A DNA stretch of 64,000 nucleotides from positions 1,175,643-1,239,642 of the forward strand of contig CAJFCJ010000014.1 in NCBI GenBank assembly GCA_904063045.1, in the 5' to 3' direction. Positions 3,251 through 38,210 of this stretch are shown here, piece by piece. The notes beneath the pieces are model-generated. The model made no database searches, had not been told where the DNA came from, and worked only from the letters and a program-made list of their open reading frames with translations. Within the stretch, counting starts at the first letter, position 1, and each line of letters opens with the position of its first letter. Source of the stretch: Dimorphilus gyrociliatus. Lineage: Eukaryota; Animalia; Annelida. The position numbers were made by a program, and so were the translations under genes.

Positions 3251-4947
3251 CTAAAAAAATGTCTAAACTATATAAAGGAAAATATCGTTTTTCAGGTTTT
3301 TGCTATTAAAGTTTTGTACATAATTAGGCCCACCGAACTCTTGTAAGACATCTACTGAACGCTTCTTAAGGAAAGTAAGTGCTCTGTTAAATATCAAATG
3401 TAAAAGGGAGGGGGTGAAAATACGTTTTTGCCTTTTATATTATTCGAATATAAATACCTCTTCTTGTTAACAAATACTTCACCTTTAGTTAGGGTTAATA
3501 CGTTCACAGGTAATAATAAAAAAAGTGTTACAAACATTCTTCAAATTTTGACTAGGATTAATTAATTAATTAATTATTATAATAATTTTTTAAATATTTA
3601 AAACAAATGTAATAAACGTCAGACAAAATGCTTTTAGATTTTATTGATCTTTACCCGTTAATTATGTCCGAAACCCCATTACCAGAGCTTCGTTTATCTT
3701 ACATCCATTACCGTGTGGGAATAAAGAAATTAGGAAGCTTTGAAATAGGAGAGGTACGTAGTTTATTACCTTCTACGTTCAACTAATATAGATAAATAGT
3801 ACATACAGTCTCTTTATATCCTATTTTTACTGGTATTTTAACTACAATGAAGATGTAGATACACAAAATAGAGGTAATTTTTTAACAATTCTCCTTTTCT
3901 CTTTTATCCAAATAATAAACGCCCTATTTATCTGCATAGTAGTTGAAAGAATCGACCTTTTCTTCAGAAAGTGAGTAATTGACATTTATTCAATGCAATT
4001 ACGTTACCTTTGATAAACGAAACGTATATATTTTATAGCCTTTTATTTTCAACAATTATTAAAGAAATACATAGGAATGAAAGGTATTCGAACTGAAAAT
4101 GTTCGAAAGAATACAAAAAGGAAGTAATTGCCTTATTGAACAAGCTTGTTAATGAATACTTAAATTTTTCTAAAACGTTCGGTTTTGTTCCTCTATCTTT
4201 TTAAGTTTTCTTAAATATAAAATATCTATACTAATTTCTTTTTAAAACCTGTAATTTTAAGCAGTGGTATTTTCTTTAGTAATCTTTAATTTATTCTATT
4301 TTTACATTGAGCGGGAAAAAGTTATCTGAAAGGGAATGTATATACAAAAAAAAGTGAACGAGTCAACGAGAGTGGTATCGCATTCATTTATTTTTTTGAC
4401 AAATATTGAAAAAATGCATGAATTGACTATTTGCATATCTTGATATCAAATTTTAATAATAAATATACTATTTAAAAAAATTGAATGTATTTATTTTTTA
4501 AATTTGTTAAGGATTATTTTGAGAAATAGAATAGTTTCTACGTTTAAATCAAATTAAGAAACTATTTGTAGTTTGAGATGATTCCTCAAATAACAGTATG
4601 TTATTATAATCACTATTCTGTTCGTAATTAATTGGATCCTTTCTAATTAATTAAAGAAAACGAATACTTTCCGACCGTAGAAGAATTGGATATGCTGATT
4701 GCAACGGCTGGGTAACCGGTTATCACCTTCAAACTACATCCGGTAGAAGTGATTTATTTAAATTTCTAATGACTTTTTATTTTCACCAATTTATTTGAGA
4801 TAATCACACTTTATTATATCTAAGGTTTAATAACATATCATATGCTTTGAACGCTAAAACTATTTTAACGTTTGAAATTATGCTACTTTATGAAAAGTTT
4901 TTAAACATTTTGAGCGATAATATAGCATTTTATATTTTAGCGGCGAT

Positions 4948-5532
4948 ATGGTGAAATTGTTCGTGGGAAATATTCCAGACGACTTATATAGTAATGAACT
5001 GAGAGAACTTTTTGAGGAATATGGAACTGTTGAGGAGGCTACCAGGTTGTCAAAATTTGCTTTTGTTGTAAGTGATACAAGTCCTTTCTTTTTATTCTTA
5101 CGTAGAAAAAAGAATAGATAAGTATTCTCTTTTCGTTTTTTCCCTTCTTTTTAAAAAAAGATCTAAGAGCTTTAAATTGTCTAAAGAAAATTTTAATATT
5201 AGCTAATAATCTCCAATTTGGCTTGATTGGAAGCGTCAAACGTGCCTGAACTAAGAACCTCAATCAATAAGCTTGTTTTAAGTTTTGTAGTCACGTAATG
5301 TGATCAGGCAATAAAAGAGAATTAAAAAGAATCAAATATTCTGATAATTTGTTCATTGAATTAAAAATTTATTTTTGCAGCATATGCCCAACGAAGAAGA
5401 AGCTAATCGAGCCTTAAAAGGATTGGACAAGTACCATTTACGAGGATTTAATATAAATGTTGAAGTATGACTGCAATAGATTAATAATATATTTATAAAT
5501 ACAGTTTTTGCCACTTAAATTATAAATATATA

Positions 5533-5576
<44 letters not shown>

Positions 5577-6554
5577 GTATATTTATTATAAAATAGATAT
5601 CAACAAGCACTGCAGGTGAGAAAGGAGGTCCTAGAAATCGAGGAGATGGCACTCATGGAAGGAGTCGAGGTGGCAACGGCGGTCCCATAAGGGTTGGAAA
5701 CGGTGGGGGTGGTGGAGGAGCTGGGGGAAACCGCGGAGGCTTTCAATCCAGATATAACCCGTACAACTTACCACCTAGCAATCAGCATTATCAACCACCA
5801 GGATACCGCTCCGAATATGAGCGGTATTTCGAAAAGCGACCTTTAAATGACATGGAAAGGCGCTTATTAAATGTTCTTCTTCGCCGTCAAGATGACTTTG
5901 ACGGTCCTCGCATGACGCAGCAACAAAGTACTCTCTGGGATCCGTACAACAGACCGCCACCTGATGCTTATAAAAGGGGAAATGAAGGGTAATTGTTATA
6001 TTTTAACCAAAAATATTTCTTTCATTTTTCAGTATTATTTTGAATATTTCCTAATATATTTTGGCTTAATTTTATTTGTTTTGGTTTTAAATATTCTGGA
6101 AATTTGGCGATTAACGTGGTTCGTGTTTTAACTAAATTCCCTTTATCTTGACTAAACATTCTTCCAGCATAAGGGGAATTTTTACATCTGATTATTTACC
6201 TTCTCTGTTTATCTTTGTCATAGTGCCAATATTGTGGTTAGAATTCTTTGAACGATTTTTAGCTGAAACCCTACCTTTTGCTTTCTCATTCAATATGATT
6301 CTCTAAGTAAATTTAGATGTTTTGTTATTACCTTTGTTATTTCAATCAAATAAGTTTCATTTTTAAATAGTCAAATCCATTTTGGTACTACGTATTACAT
6401 ATGAGCCTATCCAGAAGAGCTGATTGATAATAAAAGCCTAAATTGACTAATATTTTTTTCTAGGCCCGGGGGAGTGAGTACATTGACGTCAATTACTGCT
6501 TCGACTGCTGCCAATAATACAACATCGGGAATAAATACTTACAGATCAGCTTAG
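4948..6554 (+). CDS. RBM4: RBM4/lark-like RNA-binding protein: single RRM plus Gly/Arg-rich low-complexity tail, 4 coding exons
   Basis: MVKLFVGNIPDDL...RELFEEYGTVEE...FAFV|HMPNEEEANRALKGLDKYHLRGFNINVE resembles RBM4/lark RRM1 (MVKLFIGNLP). GT-AG introns are phase-consistent and the frame ends ...TYRSA* at 6554. Confidence 0.8.
5536..5570. repeat. (TA)n microsatellite in RBM4-like intron 2
   Basis: Uninterrupted TA run, immediately preceded by TACTGTA. Confidence 0.95.
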
Positions 6555-7182
6555 AAATTTCAAAAATATAAAGTTTTATTGCCCAGTCAAAAATTTAGTT
6601 TCGTTTTTATTTTAAACAGATATATTGGTGAAACTTGTGAGTATTATGTGAAATGAGAAATATTGTAATATATTTTAGAACAGAACAGAATTAAATCTAT
6701 AGTGTATGTCAAAACACATTATTATTGTAAATGTAATGTATACAGCATACTTTATAAACATGTTGTATATATCTGTATATATCTCTCTATATATTTGTAT
6801 ATATATATAGTGATGTATAGATATAACAATTGGAGCATTTCCTGTAAAAGATATAATATATCTTTCAAATTTGTATCATGTGATTAATATTTCCATTTGA
6901 ATGTACCATACTACTTGAAAGTACCAGTGTCAGACTTGCGTTAATGCCTGTTACGAATAATTAATTGATACATTCATAATACATTTCATCTGACACCGTC
7001 CATTAATTTATTGACTACTATTAATGAGTAATGAAACATGGGTATGATTTCTTTCCTAGTCTTGAAGAAGGAAATAATGTTTGAGCAACGAAAATTAGTT
7101 CTGAAACACTTTACAACGATATATTATTGCTTGTCTCTAATTTGCTGTAATTAAGGGCTTATAATGATACTACCATTGGTAA

Positions 7183-29456: not shown

Positions 29457-30374
29457 TTAAGAGGAGTTGATCTCTTCTAAATATCGGTAGTGTATTGACC
29501 TGTAACTTAGGTATAGCGGCTCTTCAAAAACGTTATTCTGTTGTCTGTGACGCTCTTTATGAATGTAATAGGAAGCCAGAGCGGCAGCCGTAGATGCTTG
29601 CAAGCAAATCAGATCGAATACTCGGGGAATTGGCTTCCTCCCCTGATGTTTCCACATGACATCAAGCATCGCTTTTAAGGGTGATGGATCAAATATGCCG
29701 ATAACCGAAATTTCCAAGCTAAATACGTCTATCTTTTTACCGTCAGGGGATTCAACATTAGTGTATCTCCCTCTTCTATAATCTCTCTCCCACTCCATAT
29801 TGGCTTCAAGACAACAGGAGAGTTCCAGAATGAGGTATTTAGAACCCAAGTCAACTACCAAGTCGGGATACCTATTTTTACCGTTTGCGACGAATACCAG
29901 TTCCTCCATTGGTTTATAGTCTCTAAGACTGTCAGCATAGACATCAAAATTAAACCACTGGGTAATACCATGGGCTATTTGCTCAAGAATGGCATCATGT
30001 CGCCATTGATATCTACCAAGTCTTGCTGGGTTCTTTCTACTTCTATTCATTGACATTTCACACTTTGAGAGTGAGTGATCAATGTCAGACCGAGTACTAC
30101 CACATAGGATGCAATCTTCCATTCGTAATTTAACCATTATGTAATTCAAAATAAACTTTTGAACACAAATGGTAAAATACGGAAAGAATTCATGGACCCA
30201 ATTCCATACGTGGAGGTCTTCTATGGAATATGTTACCAAGCGACGCAAATCACAACCTTTTTTATCATACTTCAGGATGTCGATTAAGCTCTCGTGTATT
30301 CTCTCCTTCTCTCTTAGAGTACCAGGGAAGACATAATTGACCATTTTTGGCTTGTAGTTTGTTAAGGAAATCAT
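29457..30374 (-). CDS. RT-less retrotransposon-derived protein 1: CCHC zinc knuckle, RHD motif and restriction-like endonuclease (RLE) fold
   Basis: CILCGSTRSDIDHSLSKC (CX2CX8HX4C), GRYQWRHDAIL, YPDLVV...LELSCCLE, LEISVIG, YYIHKER. Intact 305 codons, in-frame TAA 9 nt upstream of the ATG, no RT sequence nearby. Confidence 0.85.
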   Translation of the reverse strand: MISLTNYKPKMVNYVFPGTLREKERIHESLIDILKYDKKGCDLRRLVTYSIEDLHVWNWVHEFFPYFTICVQKFILNYIMVKLRMEDCILCGSTRSDIDHSLSKCEMSMNRSRKNPARLGRYQWRHDAILEQIAHGITQWFNFDVYADSLRDYKPMEELVFVANGKNRYPDLVVDLGSKYLILELSCCLEANMEWERDYRRGRYTNVESPDGKKIDVFSLEISVIGIFDPSPLKAMLDVMWKHQGRKPIPRVFDLICLQASTAAALASYYIHKERHRQQNNVFEEPLYLSYRSIHYRYLEEINSS

Positions 30375-30502
30375 CTTTTTTTATTGAACGTCCGGCAAGT
30401 ACGTTGATGTTTAAAAGAATGAAGAGAAAACTTTTCTGCCAGTCGATAGCTTTTTCTCACTACATTTCATTCAGCCACTGAGCGATCATGAAGGGTAAAT
30501 AG

Positions 30503-30569
30503 GCTCCGCCTCCGCCTGCACCCCAGCGTATGCTCCAAATTTTATTTACACTACAAATTTAGGCGGAGC
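30503..30569. promoter_or_regulatory. Inverted GC-box pair upstream of RLE gene 1
   Basis: GCTCCGCCT (30503-30511) and its exact reverse complement AGGCGGAGC (30561-30569), 130-195 bp upstream of the ATG. Confidence 0.35.
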
Positions 30570-32672
30570 TTAATTTCCTATGAGAGGAACCAAGGCAAAA
30601 ACCTACGTAACCTCCTTTTCTCTCTTTATCAGCGGTACCAACACTTTGGTAAATGATTCGCTAATTGACTTCGCACTTGTTTGACGTCCATTTCAGGGTT
30701 GAATTTTTTAGATAAGCAATCACTCCTAACAGATATAAATATATAAATGGTTGAGAAAATAGGAAAGAGAATTGAACAGGAAATGGAAAAGTAGAGAGGA
30801 AGGAGTAAAACTGAACACAGAAACTATATAACAATGCTAAGGACAGTTACGTACATATTTTATGACTGTACAAAAAAAAGGTTGTGATTGAGAGGAATGA
30901 GAAAGTGAGACAGAAATGAGGAAGGCGGGGGGGGGGAGGGGGTAAACGTTTAACTTTCATCCTTTAATCCTGAGTTGTTTATTCTATATAAAAAAGGAGA
31001 AGAAAGAGAAAAGAAAAAAATTTAGCCATCTGTACAGGTGACGCGATCAAAACTCCCGCCTCTTTTGTTGATCGGCGCAAGAGAAGAATGGATAAAGAGT
31101 AAAAGAAATCGTAAAGTATACAGTTTTGTCAACAATTTATCAAAATGAGAATAAATACATTTCTATATATGAACAGAGAGTGTAAAAATCTATTATATTC
31201 CTCTAAAAGCGTCTATGTCTTTGTGACTGCAAAAACATTCTTGGCTATTTGCCAACATTGAAAAAAAAAGTGTGGGTGGATAGTAAAATGGACAGTTATT
31301 ATATACCTATTAAATAAAAAAATAATAAACCGCTTTAAGCTTCCCTTCCTTTAAGGAATTTATAGAATAATAATGGAATATTCTAAATTCTTGCGTAATC
31401 ATTTTTCAAAGTTATAGTCTGCTCTCCTCCCCTCTTCTTCCCTTCCTTTCTCTTCAACTCATCGGCCAGAAGAGATTTACTTAATACTATTATATAAGAG
31501 TCATTGTTCTTTTTTTTATGTGTTATGTATACATATATGCTATATACACACACTAAACGACGATAAGAGTGGCGATAGATTGAACTATCTAAAAATAGGC
31601 CATCAATAAAAAAAAGAAGGGGGGTGAGGATGAAAGAAAAATGTAACAATTTCAAGCTAATCCGGAAACTTCATTAGATCGGCAGATCTATAACAGAGTT
31701 ATTCATTACGGTGTTTAGCATCTTATTTAAATAAATTAGGCAAAAATTTTGTAATGAATTACTTAGTAAAGCTATTAATAAAACATTAAAAACAAACATA
31801 AAAACAGGGATAAAAGGAAAAATGTTACACTAATGTTGATGAAATCAGATAAAGTCTTCTAAAAATTCCGTACAAGTTGAGAGAATTACCCTATTACGGG
31901 TTCTCTCCTAATCAGTTCTTGTTGTTACATAATAACCTGTTATCAATATCTTTACCATTCAGATAGGAATATTAAATGGGATAATAAAACACGTTTCCCA
32001 TCCTAATTTATTTGTTAGCCTTAATTGATTTTCAGGTTATATATTCAATTTAGGATTATGTTGCAACGAGATTCCCTTGGGCAATATTGGAGAAATATTT
32101 CAATACCTTTAAAGGAAACTTGAAAGAAATCGGTAATCCAAGGATAAAATAGGCCTATGGCAACTTCCGATCGGTTTCTTTTCATATTTAAGGAATGGTA
32201 AACATTTCAAATAATTTAACTTCAGATTTGACCTACTTTATATATATAAATAAAAATAGACGTTTCCCAAGCTTTCTTAGTGTATTTTTTACGTTGTATA
32301 AGCAAATATTATATAATTTATTGTTTCATTTATTTTAGGGTAGTTTTATTAAAATATCTTTGAACTTTAAAAAAAAAAAGAGACGCTTTTTACTTTTACT
32401 AGTACAATAAAATGTTACATAGGTCACAACTAAAGAATTTTTCTTGTTTCATTTCTTATTCTGTTACGGTATTAAAAATAAAAACAAAAAAAAATATTCC
32501 TAATATTGATCTTTTTCACAAAGGTTAAGGATAACTTTTATCCATTTTTTTCCAATATTTCTTGTAGAGAATGGGAGAAGATGGAAATAGGTAAAGAAGG
32601 AGAGAGAGAGAGAGAGAAAGTAGGGGAAAATTAATTATATTTTGTCAACAAATGTCTAATTTCTTCTGTTTT

Positions 32673-33874
32673 CTACTTGCAAGTGTTTGGCGGAATATCT
32701 GTTCTGCGGCGCTTGTTATTCAAATCTTTAAAGAATTCTTGAATATCTTTAGCTTCTACGGTCTAAGTGTGGGAAAAAAAAGAATAAAGATTTTAAGAAA
32801 AAAGTATGTAAGAGATGAAAAGACTGTAAAGAATTAAAATTCTTGGCGTCTCTTTTATTTACGTGTAGACTATATAGAAACTTTGTATACCTTGCGTTTT
32901 TCAGCGAATTCCTTTAGGAACGTTCCAAGTTTAGTTTTCATATTATTGTAACCGGCGAGAACTTCGTTTTGTTGAACTCTCGACATATTTTCCAGAGCTC
33001 TATTCAAATTTCCTTCTTCGCTTGCTGTACGAGTTTTGGCTTTTTCTTCGTAAGCTTGAACACTGTCCTCTGGGTCAAGAAGGAATCCTATACCACTTTC
33101 AGTATATGTTTTCTTACAATTTTGACACCTACATAATCCATTACGCCAACCTTCTCTCCAAAATACCGCTTGGGCGGAAGATTTGCTCTTCTTTTTCAAT
33201 TCATCTAAAATACAACCTTCGACATCAAGTGCCTCTTCGGTTTCAGTATCCTTTGAAGATTCATAGTGAGTGATATAGGGGATGAGAAATGTGTGCTTTT
33301 CCACACAACCTTTACAAGTGACTTCGCTGTAAGAATTTGGTGAGATAATAGATCCTTTTAAATCACCGTTCAAGTGTCTGGTGTGATGCCAATCTTCGCA
33401 TATTACGCATTGGACCATCTCGTCTTCACTGGTATCCTCAGGATCAGGGTAAGGCCGACTACAGATGCAATAAACTCCGTCGTAATTATGATTATAAGTA
33501 TTTTCCTCATTTTTCTCAGCTTTATCTGGTCTCAGTTGGCATTTGCCAGGAACTTTAGAATTACCGCAATCGCATCTCGTATTGCGCTTTGTGTAGAGTT
33601 CAACAAGGTCATGAGTATCGTGACATTCAAAGCTACAAGCCAAGCATATAGCTCCAGAACCACAACTTTTACAGCTATATAATGGCTGACGTTTCAAGTA
33701 TCCTTCATCATACGTACAAATACGAGCATCGGCTCCTCCTAAAACAGCCCTGGCATCTTCCTCTAGTTGATCCTCTTCCCTAACAATATCATTTAAATTA
33801 ACAATATCCTCTTCTTCCTCAGATTTGTTCACAATATTCTGTTGTTCGTCATTTTTACTGTTTGCGGTGGCCAT
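32673..33874 (-). CDS. UBR7: UBR7 (UBR-box plus PHD) E3 ligase, 2 exons
   Basis: EDARAVLGGAD...CTYDEGYLKRQPLYSC, VELYTKRNTRCDCGN, YNHNYDGVYCICSRPYPDPED, MVQCVICEDWHH. The terminal exon TVEAKDIQEFFKDLNNKRRR...CK* is missed by the ORF track. Confidence 0.95.
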
Positions 33875-35970
33875 TCTGGTGAAGGAGAGAAAAAGAAAAT
33901 AGAAGAAATAATTACGAAATTATTGGTCATTTATACTTGTAAATAGAAGATTACGCAATAACGAATTACATTATAGAAATGTTGGAAAAAAAAGAAAGAT
34001 GATCAATTATAACTATATTTTTAACATTAAAATTTCTAAAGAAACACATTCTAAATGTGATAAAGAACATAATCCATTAATAGTTAACCTATATAATATT
34101 TAGCATTACTACACAGCTATGTCACAGATACAGTATTTACAACATGTTTAAGAATAAAGTATGAGTCATTGTGCTGTCTCATCAACTTTTGAAGTCTATG
34201 GGTAATATTTCTTTAATATGAATATACACACATGAAAGTTTGTAGGGCTAAAAAGAAGCATTTTCTTTATGTATTGCTAAAATTTCTACAAATGTTAAAG
34301 ATTTGCGTAACGGGCATGAAATCATTAAATCGAAATATATTACATCTATAGAGTAATGATGGGAGAGTTTAAAACAGTAGCAAGGTCAATAATAAATAGA
34401 TATTTAACTACTAAACACCAGAAAATCATTAAATATCTTTGTAATATAAAAAACAAAGGTAATATGTTTTATAGATATATACTATATATAATACGTGTAC
34501 AAATTGTACAAATAACTAAAAAAACTCCTACCTTTCGTGATTGATAGTTAATCAACTATATTATCGGTTCAGTTCTATGACACAAGTAAGGACTACAAAC
34601 TCTACATTGCTCCCTCTATCAGTATAATCTTGAACATTTTATACCGCCACTAGCAACGGTTTCTAATTACAAAATCACGCATCTATAACAAAGTATTGTT
34701 AAATCCAAACAACTGAAATATTTTTACTTCCTTGCACTTAATTTTAAAATGAATGATAGAAAAAGTTTAATGTAGCCTCTATTTTTAAAACTATACAATC
34801 CCCCTTATACTTCTTTGAGTAAACAAATATTAATCTATAAATAGAGTGTTTTTTCTCTCTATATAACTAAGAAACTAATAAAAAAAATCATTTTTTTTTC
34901 TTTTTAATGATCGGCATGAATTTTACTTTCGGCTGTTAAATATAGAATAAAAAGAGTATTAATAACTTGACAATTAACATTATATTACAAGAATTCATAT
35001 TCACTTAGGAGTTTACTTTTCATCCAAATTATTAATACCAGTTGTATTATATATCTCTATTTTTGGGCAATTAATTAGTTTATTTAAGAAAAATGTATCA
35101 AGATGACAAAACGAAATAGGAAACAAAAAAGCCTTTGATGTTTTATTACATTCTACGCATAGAGTGAATTTATTGAAGAGTTGGTACGTGAAAGCCGGGC
35201 AAAACAAACCTTAGGTAAATGACTCAACTTATGTAATTCGTATTATTGATAAGAATGTATATCTCTTTCTAAATAAGTATGTAATGCCTATAAACATTAC
35301 CTAATATTCATGAGGATCTTTCGCTCGCGTTAATCCTTTGATAAGGTATCGAAAAAAAATTACATCATGTGCATGTCCTCTCTTTTTTTTGTTTCAGGGA
35401 AAAAAGTAACATTAGGAATTTTCAGGGATTTTCGGTCGTTGACACAAAAAAGAAGATAAATATTCAGTGGGCGTACCTACCCTTTAACACCTAGATATCT
35501 ATTAAAAAATTTAACTTCCGGATGAAATAAATCTCGACGATACCTCCTAAAGGCGAACACAAATCTTTTTTGTTGCAATTTTAAAGCTAACTATTCGTAT
35601 CACGTGGAAATAGACCTTCTTTTGATAAAAAAAACTGGAAAGACAGTATCTAATTGATAAACGAACTATAATATAACATACAGTTTTTCAAGCCGTTTCA
35701 GCCATACGAAGGTTCTTTATTTGCTTTTTTTTTCTCTTCTAATTTAAGTAGTTTGTTAATCAAAAGCCTAAAAAATAAAAGTATTGAAAAATGGACAAAT
35801 TCGTTTGCTTGTTTTTTTTAAAAAAAAAACTTTATAAGATTCTTTTTTTCTTTTTTGTTCTTTTTTTAATTTCATTGGCAATTTACGCAAAATATTTAAG
35901 CAATTATTTTAGTATTGACAATATTTAGGACATACTTAAATTACTCATTAAAGGTCAATACTGTTTTTTT

Positions 35971-36777
35971 TCAATACTGCGACCAATGAAGTAAACTGGA
36001 ACGTTTCCATTCTGCCTTAGCACGTTCCGTATAGATAAAATGCGAACATAGCGTAACGACTTGTGTAATTCTAAGGATCGTATGCTTCATTCTTCTCTTA
36101 TCCCTGCCGCTTAACTTCTCTCGCTTTATAGCGCGCATGATCTCCTCCAAAGGACTTGAATTGAATAAGCCGAACGAAGAAACTTCAAGCGTATAAATTG
36201 TCAACGGTTTTCCGTTCAATTCTGTAAGACCCTTGAACTTATCTTTCTTACCATGCTTGTAGACGTCTAAGCTAAGTTCGTTGCAGACGGTCAATTCTAA
36301 ACCAAAATATCTTTCTTCGGTTTCAACTATTATACCTGGTAGCTTTCCCTTCATTTCTTCTTCCTTCGTTAATTCATCGATAGGAGGATAACGTTGCAAG
36401 TCGTTCGCAAAAACCTTGTGTTCGCCGAATCCCTTTAACCAATCAGCCAATAGACGAGCGACAGAATCATGTCTCCACTTATAACGGTCTGCAGCGTCCT
36501 TGCAGTTTGACAAAACATGAATATCATTCACATCAGTTTTCTTACACAAAAAACATTCGTTCCCAACGGACAAACCGTCCGTAAGGAAAGTTAAAATAGT
36601 GCGTTGAGCGGCTAAGGCACACCATTCGACATTTTCGCACCATCTTCGTTTATCCAGCCAACGTAGGGATCTTTCAGTCGGCCAACCAACAAAAGCTTGT
36701 TCATGAATTGAAATAATACGGTCATAGACCGTTGAATGATAAAAAGTTGGCTTTCTATGAGAAAAGTATGACGGCAT
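35971..36777 (-). CDS. RT-less retrotransposon-derived protein 2: CCHC knuckle, RHD motif and RLE fold, with the catalytic PD changed to PG
   Basis: CFLCKKTDVNDIHVLSNC, DRYKWRHDSV, KLPGIIV...LELTVCNE, KKDKF, LEVSSFG, SHFIYTER. Intact 268 codons; the frame is open to 36843. Confidence 0.85.
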   Translation of the reverse strand: MPSYFSHRKPTFYHSTVYDRIISIHEQAFVGWPTERSLRWLDKRRWCENVEWCALAAQRTILTFLTDGLSVGNECFLCKKTDVNDIHVLSNCKDAADRYKWRHDSVARLLADWLKGFGEHKVFANDLQRYPPIDELTKEEEMKGKLPGIIVETEERYFGLELTVCNELSLDVYKHGKKDKFKGLTELNGKPLTIYTLEVSSFGLFNSSPLEEIMRAIKREKLSGRDKRRMKHTILRITQVVTLCSHFIYTERAKAEWKRSSLLHWSQY

Positions 36778-36947
36778 TGTTCGAGTTAAGAGACTTGATG
36801 GTAAACTGACGTTTTCCTCTTCTAGATAGCTTTTGAAATATACTCAATAACTGCCTGTCTTTTATTTTGAAATATTCCATTTGAGTTCTAATTACTTTTG
36901 TAACAATCCAGGTGGCATTGCAATCAATAACCTTACGATATACTATC

Positions 36948-37478
36948 ATGTCAGGCACAAAATATCAACCTATTAAGAGTAATCTACAAGTCTATCCTGT
37001 AAGATTTTTGCCGGATGAAGATTTGAAGGAATGTTTAAAAAGATTTGTTCAGGATGCCGATTTAAAAGCTCCATTTATTCTTACTTGTTGTGGAAGTTTG
37101 AAAAGAGCGAAAATTCGTTTGGCTGATGCAGAAGTGGGCAAAGATAACAAAACTGTCAGATATATTTTCTAAATTGCCTATCTCTAGACTAAATTCTTGA
37201 AATATTTTCAATCAATTCCTATTAATTTATCATAATAGATTACTTTGGATGGCCGCTACGAAATAATATCTTTGGTAGGAACCTTAAATGGTAATGGTCA
37301 TCTTCATATATCTTTGGCTGATGACAAGGGTCAACTTATTGGTGGGCATGTGGTAAGTGATTTAATCATCTATACAACAGCCGAAGTTGTAATTGGTGAA
37401 TGTAATGACACATTATTTTCACGAGACACATGTGACAAGAGCGGTTGGGATGAATTGGTTGTAACAAAAAAAAATTAA
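36948..37478 (+). CDS. PPC/DUF296-domain protein, 2 exons
   Basis: VYPVRFLPDEDL, ILTCCGSL, YEIISLVGTL, HLHISLADDKGQLIGGH, YTTAEVVI (PPC/DUF296 motifs including HxH...H). Confidence 0.85.
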
Positions 37479-38210
37479 CATAGACAAGATGTTGATGTGC
37501 AACAATAAAATATGCTTAGTGTACTACCTAATAATAAAAATCAAATTAATTACATACCTGATTAATTGAAATGAATATGTTTTGTGTCCTTCTTCTGTTA
37601 CCACCGTTTTGCTTTTCGCGCTTTTTCTCTCCGTTTACGCTTCCATCTTTGATCACAATGCAAATTTTCAATGTTATTTTCGTATTTCAAATAAATTTTG
37701 ATTATGGTTTTTTTTTTAAAAATAACTATACAAATTTAGCTTTATTGTTCATAAAATCTTTATAATAAAGTAATATTTGAAAAATTACAAAACTGTTCAT
37801 ACCGGAAGAGGCAAAACTGAAATTTTTTAAATTTGTATACTCTACTGTAGTTATTATTTTTACTAATTTTCTGTGAAATGGAAAATATTTAATAAAAAAT
37901 AGATATTGATTATTGGTTTACAAAAAGCGCTCTAGTCGAATCTACTAGTACTAATGACAGAATCCTTAAGTAATGATAAATATAATTCAAAAAGAGTGGA
38001 GCATATGTTGAATCAATTCAAAAGTTACTGTAAAAAAGTATTGTAGGGTATTCATCTGTTTAACTATAATAACGTACCGCTAATATTAAGTTATCTTTGT
38101 ATCCAGTACTTATTTTTGAATCGTATTTTTTATTGACTCTGAATGACATTCAATGACTCCTAATTTTCGATTTCTCACAAATAAGAGCTATTTAACAATC
38201 GTCTTAAGAA

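Follow-up and report, generated by a model that had tools for sequence, protein, structure and literature searches.

Two linked genes of the annelid Dimorphilus gyrociliatus, probably host genes derived from the zinc-knuckle and endonuclease module of an R2-type retrotransposon

In a stretch of 64,000 nucleotides from the annelid Dimorphilus gyrociliatus (assembly GCA_904063045.1, contig CAJFCJ010000014.1, positions 1,175,643 to 1,239,642; hereafter the window, in whose own numbering positions are given), we found two linked genes, A and B, which are probably host genes descended from the part of an R2-type long interspersed nuclear element (LINE) that follows its reverse transcriptase (RT), and which are now under selection, transcribed and likely to bind nucleic acids with reduced cleavage. 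In this account, their source would be the post-RT part, namely linker helices, a CCHC zinc knuckle and a restriction-like endonuclease (RLE) fold, of an RLE-clade R2-type non-long-terminal-repeat retrotransposon. The RT would have been lost once to yield an RT-less host gene, whose duplication would long predate the divergence of the two species under comparison; since then, purifying selection would have held both copies over their whole length while both were transcribed. The comparison species is a single one, represented by a 28-kb Logan contig, L005, from another organism. A and B would act as zinc-dependent DNA or RNA binders with cleavage lost or much weakened, one possible role being the occupation of nucleic acids recognized by RLE-bearing LINEs. 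We regard the descent, the single loss of the RT, the duplication, the selection and the transcription as documented by the analyses below, whereas the binding role is something we infer.

Both genes lie on the minus strand as stop-free open reading frames (ORFs) with 5,596 nt between them, and they flank a UBR7-like gene; a sequence-only reading that preceded this work had described precisely such a pair, intronless, on the same strand and about 5.6 kb apart. The features of the two genes are as follows.

29457..30374, minus strand: gene A, an intronless ORF of 305 aa with linker helices, a CCHC zinc knuckle and an RLE fold
35971..36777, minus strand: gene B, an intronless ORF of 268 aa, paralogue of A
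30060..30113, minus strand: zinc knuckle of A, C88-x2-C91-x8-H100-x4-C105
36502..36555, minus strand: zinc knuckle of B, C75-x2-C78-x8-H87-x4-C92
29535..30014, minus strand: RLE core of A (residues 121-280), with R121, R125-H126, D148, P170-D171, E184, E190, E221 and G226 kept
36010..36486, minus strand: RLE core of B (residues 98-256), with R98, R102-H103, D126, E161, E167, K177, K180 and G203 kept
29775..29777, minus strand: codon 200 of A, arginine at the position of the catalytic lysine (the first K of KX2KY)
36334..36336, minus strand: codon 148 of B, glycine at the position of the PD aspartate

The two proteins align with 24% identity over 219 aa (E 7e-28), a similarity far beyond chance that marks them as paralogues. 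They respectively carry the motifs RYQWRHD and RYKWRHD and the C-terminal tails SYYIHKER and SHFIYTER, and the core of B additionally shows substitutions of Y to F at 181 and of N to S at 169. Hence, the motifs first reported for the pair, CX2CX8HX4C, R(Y)xWRHD and the tails ending in ER, are all present, whereas the PD assumed for B is in fact PG and A has an arginine at the catalytic lysine. Direct annotation was of little help: Pfam gave no match for A or B, RT included; sequence searches of the PDB with A, B and a four-sequence profile returned nothing useful; and word-indexed protein searches recovered no named proteins, their sole matches being the B orthologue and a handful of LINE fragments.

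The origin of the module emerged from a profile built from A, B and their orthologues and run against 1.84 billion cluster representatives, which recovered 621 proteins at E <= 1e-3, the best match outside the family being at 1.7e-17. The matched part is always C-terminal in these relatives, and the long ones among them (722-1142 aa) show, in Pfam searches, RVT_1 and usually also zf-RVT upstream of it. One such relative, P0049, aligns with R2 proteins of solved structure over the RT, the knuckle and the RLE (E 4.6e-38), and the highest-scoring outside match, P0152, directly follows an RVT_1 ORF on its own contig, giving it the look of a frameshifted LINE copy. An AlphaFold model of A from a 71-sequence alignment (pLDDT 80.8, pTM 0.82, core above 90) retrieved R2 proteins as all of its top seven Foldseek matches in the PDB; a first run with four sequences had been too poor for use (pLDDT 43). 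In VIA-align comparisons, residues 26/30-282 of the model superimpose on residues 789-1107 of R2Bm, i.e., from the post-thumb linker to the C-terminus, with Z 15.2-17.6 across seven R2 entries, which is the outcome of the comparison with the R2Bm C-terminal domain that the sequence-only reading had proposed. After R2, the nearest structural matches are PD-(D/E)xK endonucleases, led by the influenza PA-N endonuclease at Z 7.6, and the secondary structure of the model (a helix at 121-140, four strands, a helix at 190-203 and a strand at 214-223) fits that nuclease fold superfamily. Feature and shape searches of the ESM Atlas led to the same eukaryotic clusters with zf-RVT and RVT_1. We assign the descent of A and B to the knuckle and RLE module because of the profile search, the Pfam domains of the long matches and the fold comparison, in keeping with the earlier claim that this module forms the C-terminus of RLE-clade LINEs. 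As modelled, the core of A is that part of such an element which comprises the linker, zinc knuckle and RLE, and the same holds for B by its alignment to A. Rfam searches of the contigs that carry the nearest LINE relatives detected no target gene; therefore, we do not assign these relatives to a particular clade (R2, R4, NeSL, HERO or CRE). As a separate observation, one relative of 669 aa, P0079, carries the knuckle and RLE at residues 68-302 followed by about 370 more residues, unlike the usual C-terminal placement.

To what extent do A and B retain the chemistry of their source? In the R2-type RLE, an RH motif serves DNA binding, the PD and E residues form part of the catalytic set, and the catalytic lysine is the first K of KX2KY in helix 2 (PMC5678591). 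Conservation at these positions was scored in 116 LINE-borne relatives (residue numbers are those of A unless stated otherwise).

Four zinc ligands: at least 97% in the relatives; kept in A and B
R125-H126: 116/116 and 115/116 of the relatives; kept in A and B
D148: 116/116 of the relatives; kept in A and B
PD aspartate: D in 116/116 of the relatives; kept in A (D171), Gly148 in B
E184: 114/116 of the relatives; kept in A and B
First K of KX2KY: K in 116/116 of the relatives; Arg200 in A, kept in B (K177)
Tyr of KX2KY: 115/116 of the relatives; kept in A (Y204), Phe181 in B

These stretches align without gaps, and the replacements in A and B recur identically in the L005 orthologues. Judged by these residues, both paralogues retain the elements for binding, but neither has the full set for cleavage. 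Because the zinc ligands and the R..RH residues, which R2Bm requires to bind DNA, are kept, while A has exchanged its lysine for arginine and B the metal-binding aspartate of its PD motif for glycine, A and B are most likely nucleic-acid binders in which cleavage has been lost or weakened. Of the proposed stand-alone nucleic-acid-binding or nuclease family, the host gene pair thus stands, whereas the label "endonuclease" is doubtful, each paralogue having lost one invariant residue.

Two other views of the activity of the pair deserve consideration. In the first, which we hold to be unlikely, A would still nick in a Mg-dependent manner, Arg200 taking the place of the lysine, B would be its non-catalytic partner or regulator, and the pair would form a working host nuclease. 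A indeed keeps all the acidic residues of the site (D148, D171, E184, E190 and E221) along with Y204, a persistence unexpected of an unused site, and the two genes are linked in both species; however, all 116 LINE relatives have the lysine that A has replaced, and it is identified as catalytic in R2Bm (PMC5678591). The second, which is more improbable still, would see in A and B a disabled pair, perhaps a heterodimer, that binds the target DNA or RNA of RLE-bearing LINEs and thereby blocks their integration. Were this true, it would amount to a host defense fashioned from the parasite's own targeting and cleavage module and might partly account for the great scarcity of repeats in this compact genome. 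A prediction of the complex of A (residues 20-290) with B scored 0.00; it was run without custom alignments and is counted neither for nor against binding.

Returning to the descent of both genes from one RT-less host gene, phylogenetic analysis under the site-heterogeneous model LG+C20+F+G4 (with posterior mean site frequencies, PMSF) united A and B in one clade (UFBoot 100, SH-aLRT 99), whose stem measures about 1.07 changes per site. The two are reciprocal best matches, at 96 bits versus 84 and 75 for the best LINE relative, and share the derived residues Y180, F228, P232-L233, L258 and E274 (A numbering). Most LINE relatives have an LPT..NL.RW stretch between the last linker helix and the knuckle, which is absent at that place in both A and B, as the initial reading had suggested; residues 32-40 of B (WPTERSLRW) resemble it but lie 43 residues before the knuckle and are ambiguous. 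The path from A to B measures 2.2 changes per site, about 20 times the distance between orthologues, and hence the duplication is much older than the species split. Against a single origin one might propose that A and B were captured separately from two RLE-bearing LINE copies and that their grouping is a long-branch artefact: their raw identity to each other (21-24%) is no higher than that of either to the LINE relatives (18-28%), and their N-termini are not mutually alignable. We consider this very improbable in view of the clade support under the LG+C20 PMSF model, the reciprocal best matches, the common derived states, the joint lack of the LPT..NL.RW stretch and the placement of the genes on the same strand 5.6 kb apart. 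As to the N-termini, a shuffling test detected no significant similarity between A and B over their first 60-85 residues, although LINE proteins align into this part of both by tblastn; the invariant N-terminal columns of the A/B alignment were dropped as evidence of homology, since shuffling gave them no support.

A sign that A and B are maintained by the host comes from L005, where the gene order PCC, B, UBR7, A is the same as in the window and collinear with it. At the protein level, the orthologue of B (P0001) is 92% and that of A (L005:16351-17292) 87% identical, without gaps within the ORFs. For A, the proportion of nonsynonymous differences (pN) is 0.075 and that of synonymous differences (pS) 0.77, for a pN/pS of 0.098 (Fisher p 2.7e-81); for B, the corresponding values are 0.044, 0.585 and 0.074 (Fisher p 8.4e-54). 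Synonymous sites of both genes are close to saturation between the two species, and every segment is constrained, including the N- and C-terminal parts beyond the recognizable module. Both genes are less changed than the neighboring UBR7, whose pN is 0.121.

Transcription was assessed with contigs of four public runs placed on 30175-36174, three of unstated type and one a declared metatranscriptome. The three behave as cDNA: the 128-nt intron of UBR7 is absent from them and intergenic DNA is uncovered. Contigs of 1,830 nt (X3 record 8) and 1,372 nt (X4 record 15) run unspliced through the ORF of A and past it, reaching its 5' flank to 30790 and 30482, and contigs of 1,813 nt (X4 record 18) and 1,624 nt cover B with its 3' flank to 35311. 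The declared metatranscriptome contributes pieces inside both genes, and uncovered gaps at 31375-32174 and 33975-35174 part A and B from the body of UBR7. Thus, both A and B are transcribed, with the following untranslated regions (UTRs).

30375..30790, minus strand: 5'UTR of A, covered by unspliced cDNA-like contigs
35311..35970, minus strand: 3'UTR of B, with a cDNA-like contig collinear from 35311 through the ORF

Taken with the clade, the reciprocal best matches and the constrained syntenic orthologues, these contigs fit the early proposal that selection has maintained the descendants of a common RT-less ancestor. In run X2, the non-canonical joints from 30804 to 32237 and from 31020 to 32470 were disregarded, as they have 21-nt sides and occur in single contigs. 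Upstream of A, the 1.6 kb at 30375-31959 is free of ORFs, shows about 70% identity to the relative and has cDNA-like coverage in part, up to 31316; it may represent an extended 5'UTR or else a conserved transcript, regulatory or non-coding.

The two loci do not look like transposon copies. Six-frame searches of the 77.9-Mb assembly, with the single proteins and with a deeper profile, recovered only A and B themselves. No RT remnant was detected near either, as the sequence-only reading had asserted: beside the negative Pfam result, no ORF occurs in the 2.5 kb upstream of A, and 13 RT-bearing relatives used as tblastn queries matched only with their post-RT ends, inside A and B. There is no room for an RT upstream of B because a PCC-domain gene on the opposite strand lies 135 nt away.

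36912..37478, plus strand: PCC-domain gene with two exons, in head-to-head arrangement with B, whose ATG is 135 nt away (Pfam PF03479 on the orthologous L005 ORFs)

Flanking repeats or target-site marks were not found at A or B, a repeat search yielding only low-complexity matches. The deeper profile also found the RT-bearing RLE LINEs of this genome, on contigs C29 and C272, but their similarity to A and B is marginal (BLASTP E 0.087 and 0.004), and hence these are not a recent parent of the pair; near-identical RT-bearing parents, named at the outset as the case that would speak against a host gene pair, were searched for in the genome assembly and not found. We give next to no credence to the notion that A and B are not host genes but LINE insertions in decay after 5' truncation, or else ORFs belonging to a non-autonomous element, for although 5' truncation is the usual fate of LINE copies and this genome holds active-looking RLE-bearing LINEs, each gene exists in one copy, the frames are intact in two species despite near-saturated synonymous sites and a pN/pS of 0.07-0.10, the synteny is conserved without repeats or target-site marks, and the resemblance to the resident LINEs is marginal. 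Of the traits of an autonomous RLE-clade LINE, A and B thus have the CCHC knuckle and the RLE fold but not the RT, the complete catalytic set or the multiple copies and repeated target; of those of a domesticated gene, they have a transposon origin without the parts for transposition, syntenic single-copy orthologues, purifying selection and transcription.

Certain points weigh against the interpretation of A and B as a once-captured, duplicated pair of host-encoded binders. The margin by which they are mutual best matches is modest (96 bits against 84 and 75), and, their branches being long, long-branch attraction could inflate the support for the clade. A shared point of truncation is not established, the N-termini being dissimilar. 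An arginine in place of the catalytic lysine is no proof that A is inactive. The evidence for expression consists of contigs, from which neither strand nor level can be read, and, its genes having been found in one other species only, the family has an age and spread that are loosely constrained.

Among known systems, the R2 proteins (R2Bm 8gh6/8ibw, R2Tg 9dou/9nl3 and Platysternon R2 9nl2) have the same fold and order of elements as A over about 210 aligned residues, and they have in common with A and B a CCHC knuckle, an RH motif that opens helix 1, the arrangement PD..E..KX2KY and a glycine following strand 4. In contrast to them, A and B have no RT, N-terminal zinc finger, Myb domain or association with a target site, exist in one copy each, have replaced the catalytic lysine (A) or the PD aspartate (B), lack LPT..NL.RW before the knuckle and are only 13-16% identical in sequence. 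The nearest sequence relatives are RT-bearing RLE LINEs from metagenome and eukaryote assemblies (such as P0049 and P0152), with 28-35% identity over the knuckle and RLE; unlike A and B, these have an RT, several copies of differing length and all the catalytic residues. Utopia elements are LINEs of the NeSL clade that target U2 small nuclear RNA (snRNA) genes (PMC4640811); they, including the U2-associated copies of this genome, belong to the RLE clade and have the C-terminal domain order of A and B, but their similarity to the pair is marginal. Prp8 offers a cellular RLE-like domain that is related to the LINE RLE and is used without DNA cleavage (PMC5678591). It differs from A and B in being universal in eukaryotes, keeping an RT-like domain and having no CCHC knuckle, and it matches the structure modelled for A far less well (Foldseek E no better than 0.03).

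Host genes made from the proteins of non-LTR retrotransposons are rare. Full-text literature searches found no host gene derived from an R2-group RLE, the nearest parallel in the literature being the ancient relationship between the LINE RT-RLE and Prp8 (PMC5678591). At 268-305 aa, A and B constitute a compact natural construct in which the R2-type linker, knuckle and RLE work without an RT; such an RT-less module is of interest as R2 proteins are under study as tools for gene insertion. That A and B have each lost one catalytic residue, and in a complementary way, offers a clear and testable hint of a shift from cutting to binding. The reach of these findings is limited, the known range of the family being one miniature annelid lineage and the role of A and B in their host putative.

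The gene between A and B requires a revised description, as it is not intronless: one intron interrupts it close to the 3' end, and a 5'UTR exon lies upstream of it.

32329..33875, minus strand: UBR7-like gene between A and B, whose 334-aa ORF has a zf-UBR Pfam match
33876..37557, minus strand: 5'UTR intron of one UBR7 isoform, within which lie gene B, on the same strand, and the PCC gene, on the opposite one

The intron close to the 3' end, at 32763-32890, is a 128-nt GT-AG intron spliced out in contigs of all four runs, and hence the ORF end at 32870 is not the true UBR7 stop. The upstream exon (37558 and above) lies 3.7 kb upstream: a loose 5' end in two runs uniquely matches 37561-37587, and the minus-strand joints read CAG/GTATGT at 37558/37557 and CAG/aATG at 33876/33875. 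A spliced leader on UBR7 was rejected, as the loose end maps within the window. Since this 5'UTR intron encloses B, the latter may share a promoter with UBR7. A scan for sigma-70 promoters and terminators was not meaningful for an animal gene.

Two further observations concern mobile elements in the genomes compared. On contig C29 (560001-595777, L031-L034) and on C272, several LINE copies with RT and RLE are interleaved with U2 snRNA genes, for which eight matches to Rfam RF00004 were obtained; an example is the 901-aa ORF with RVT_1 at L031:3736-6441. Interleaving with U2 is a hallmark of Utopia, the description of which makes no mention of annelids (PMC4640811). In L005, two DDE_3-like ORFs (4408-6829) lie between a NACHT gene and the PCC gene and have no counterpart in the window; they are probably a DNA-transposon insertion in the lineage of the relative.

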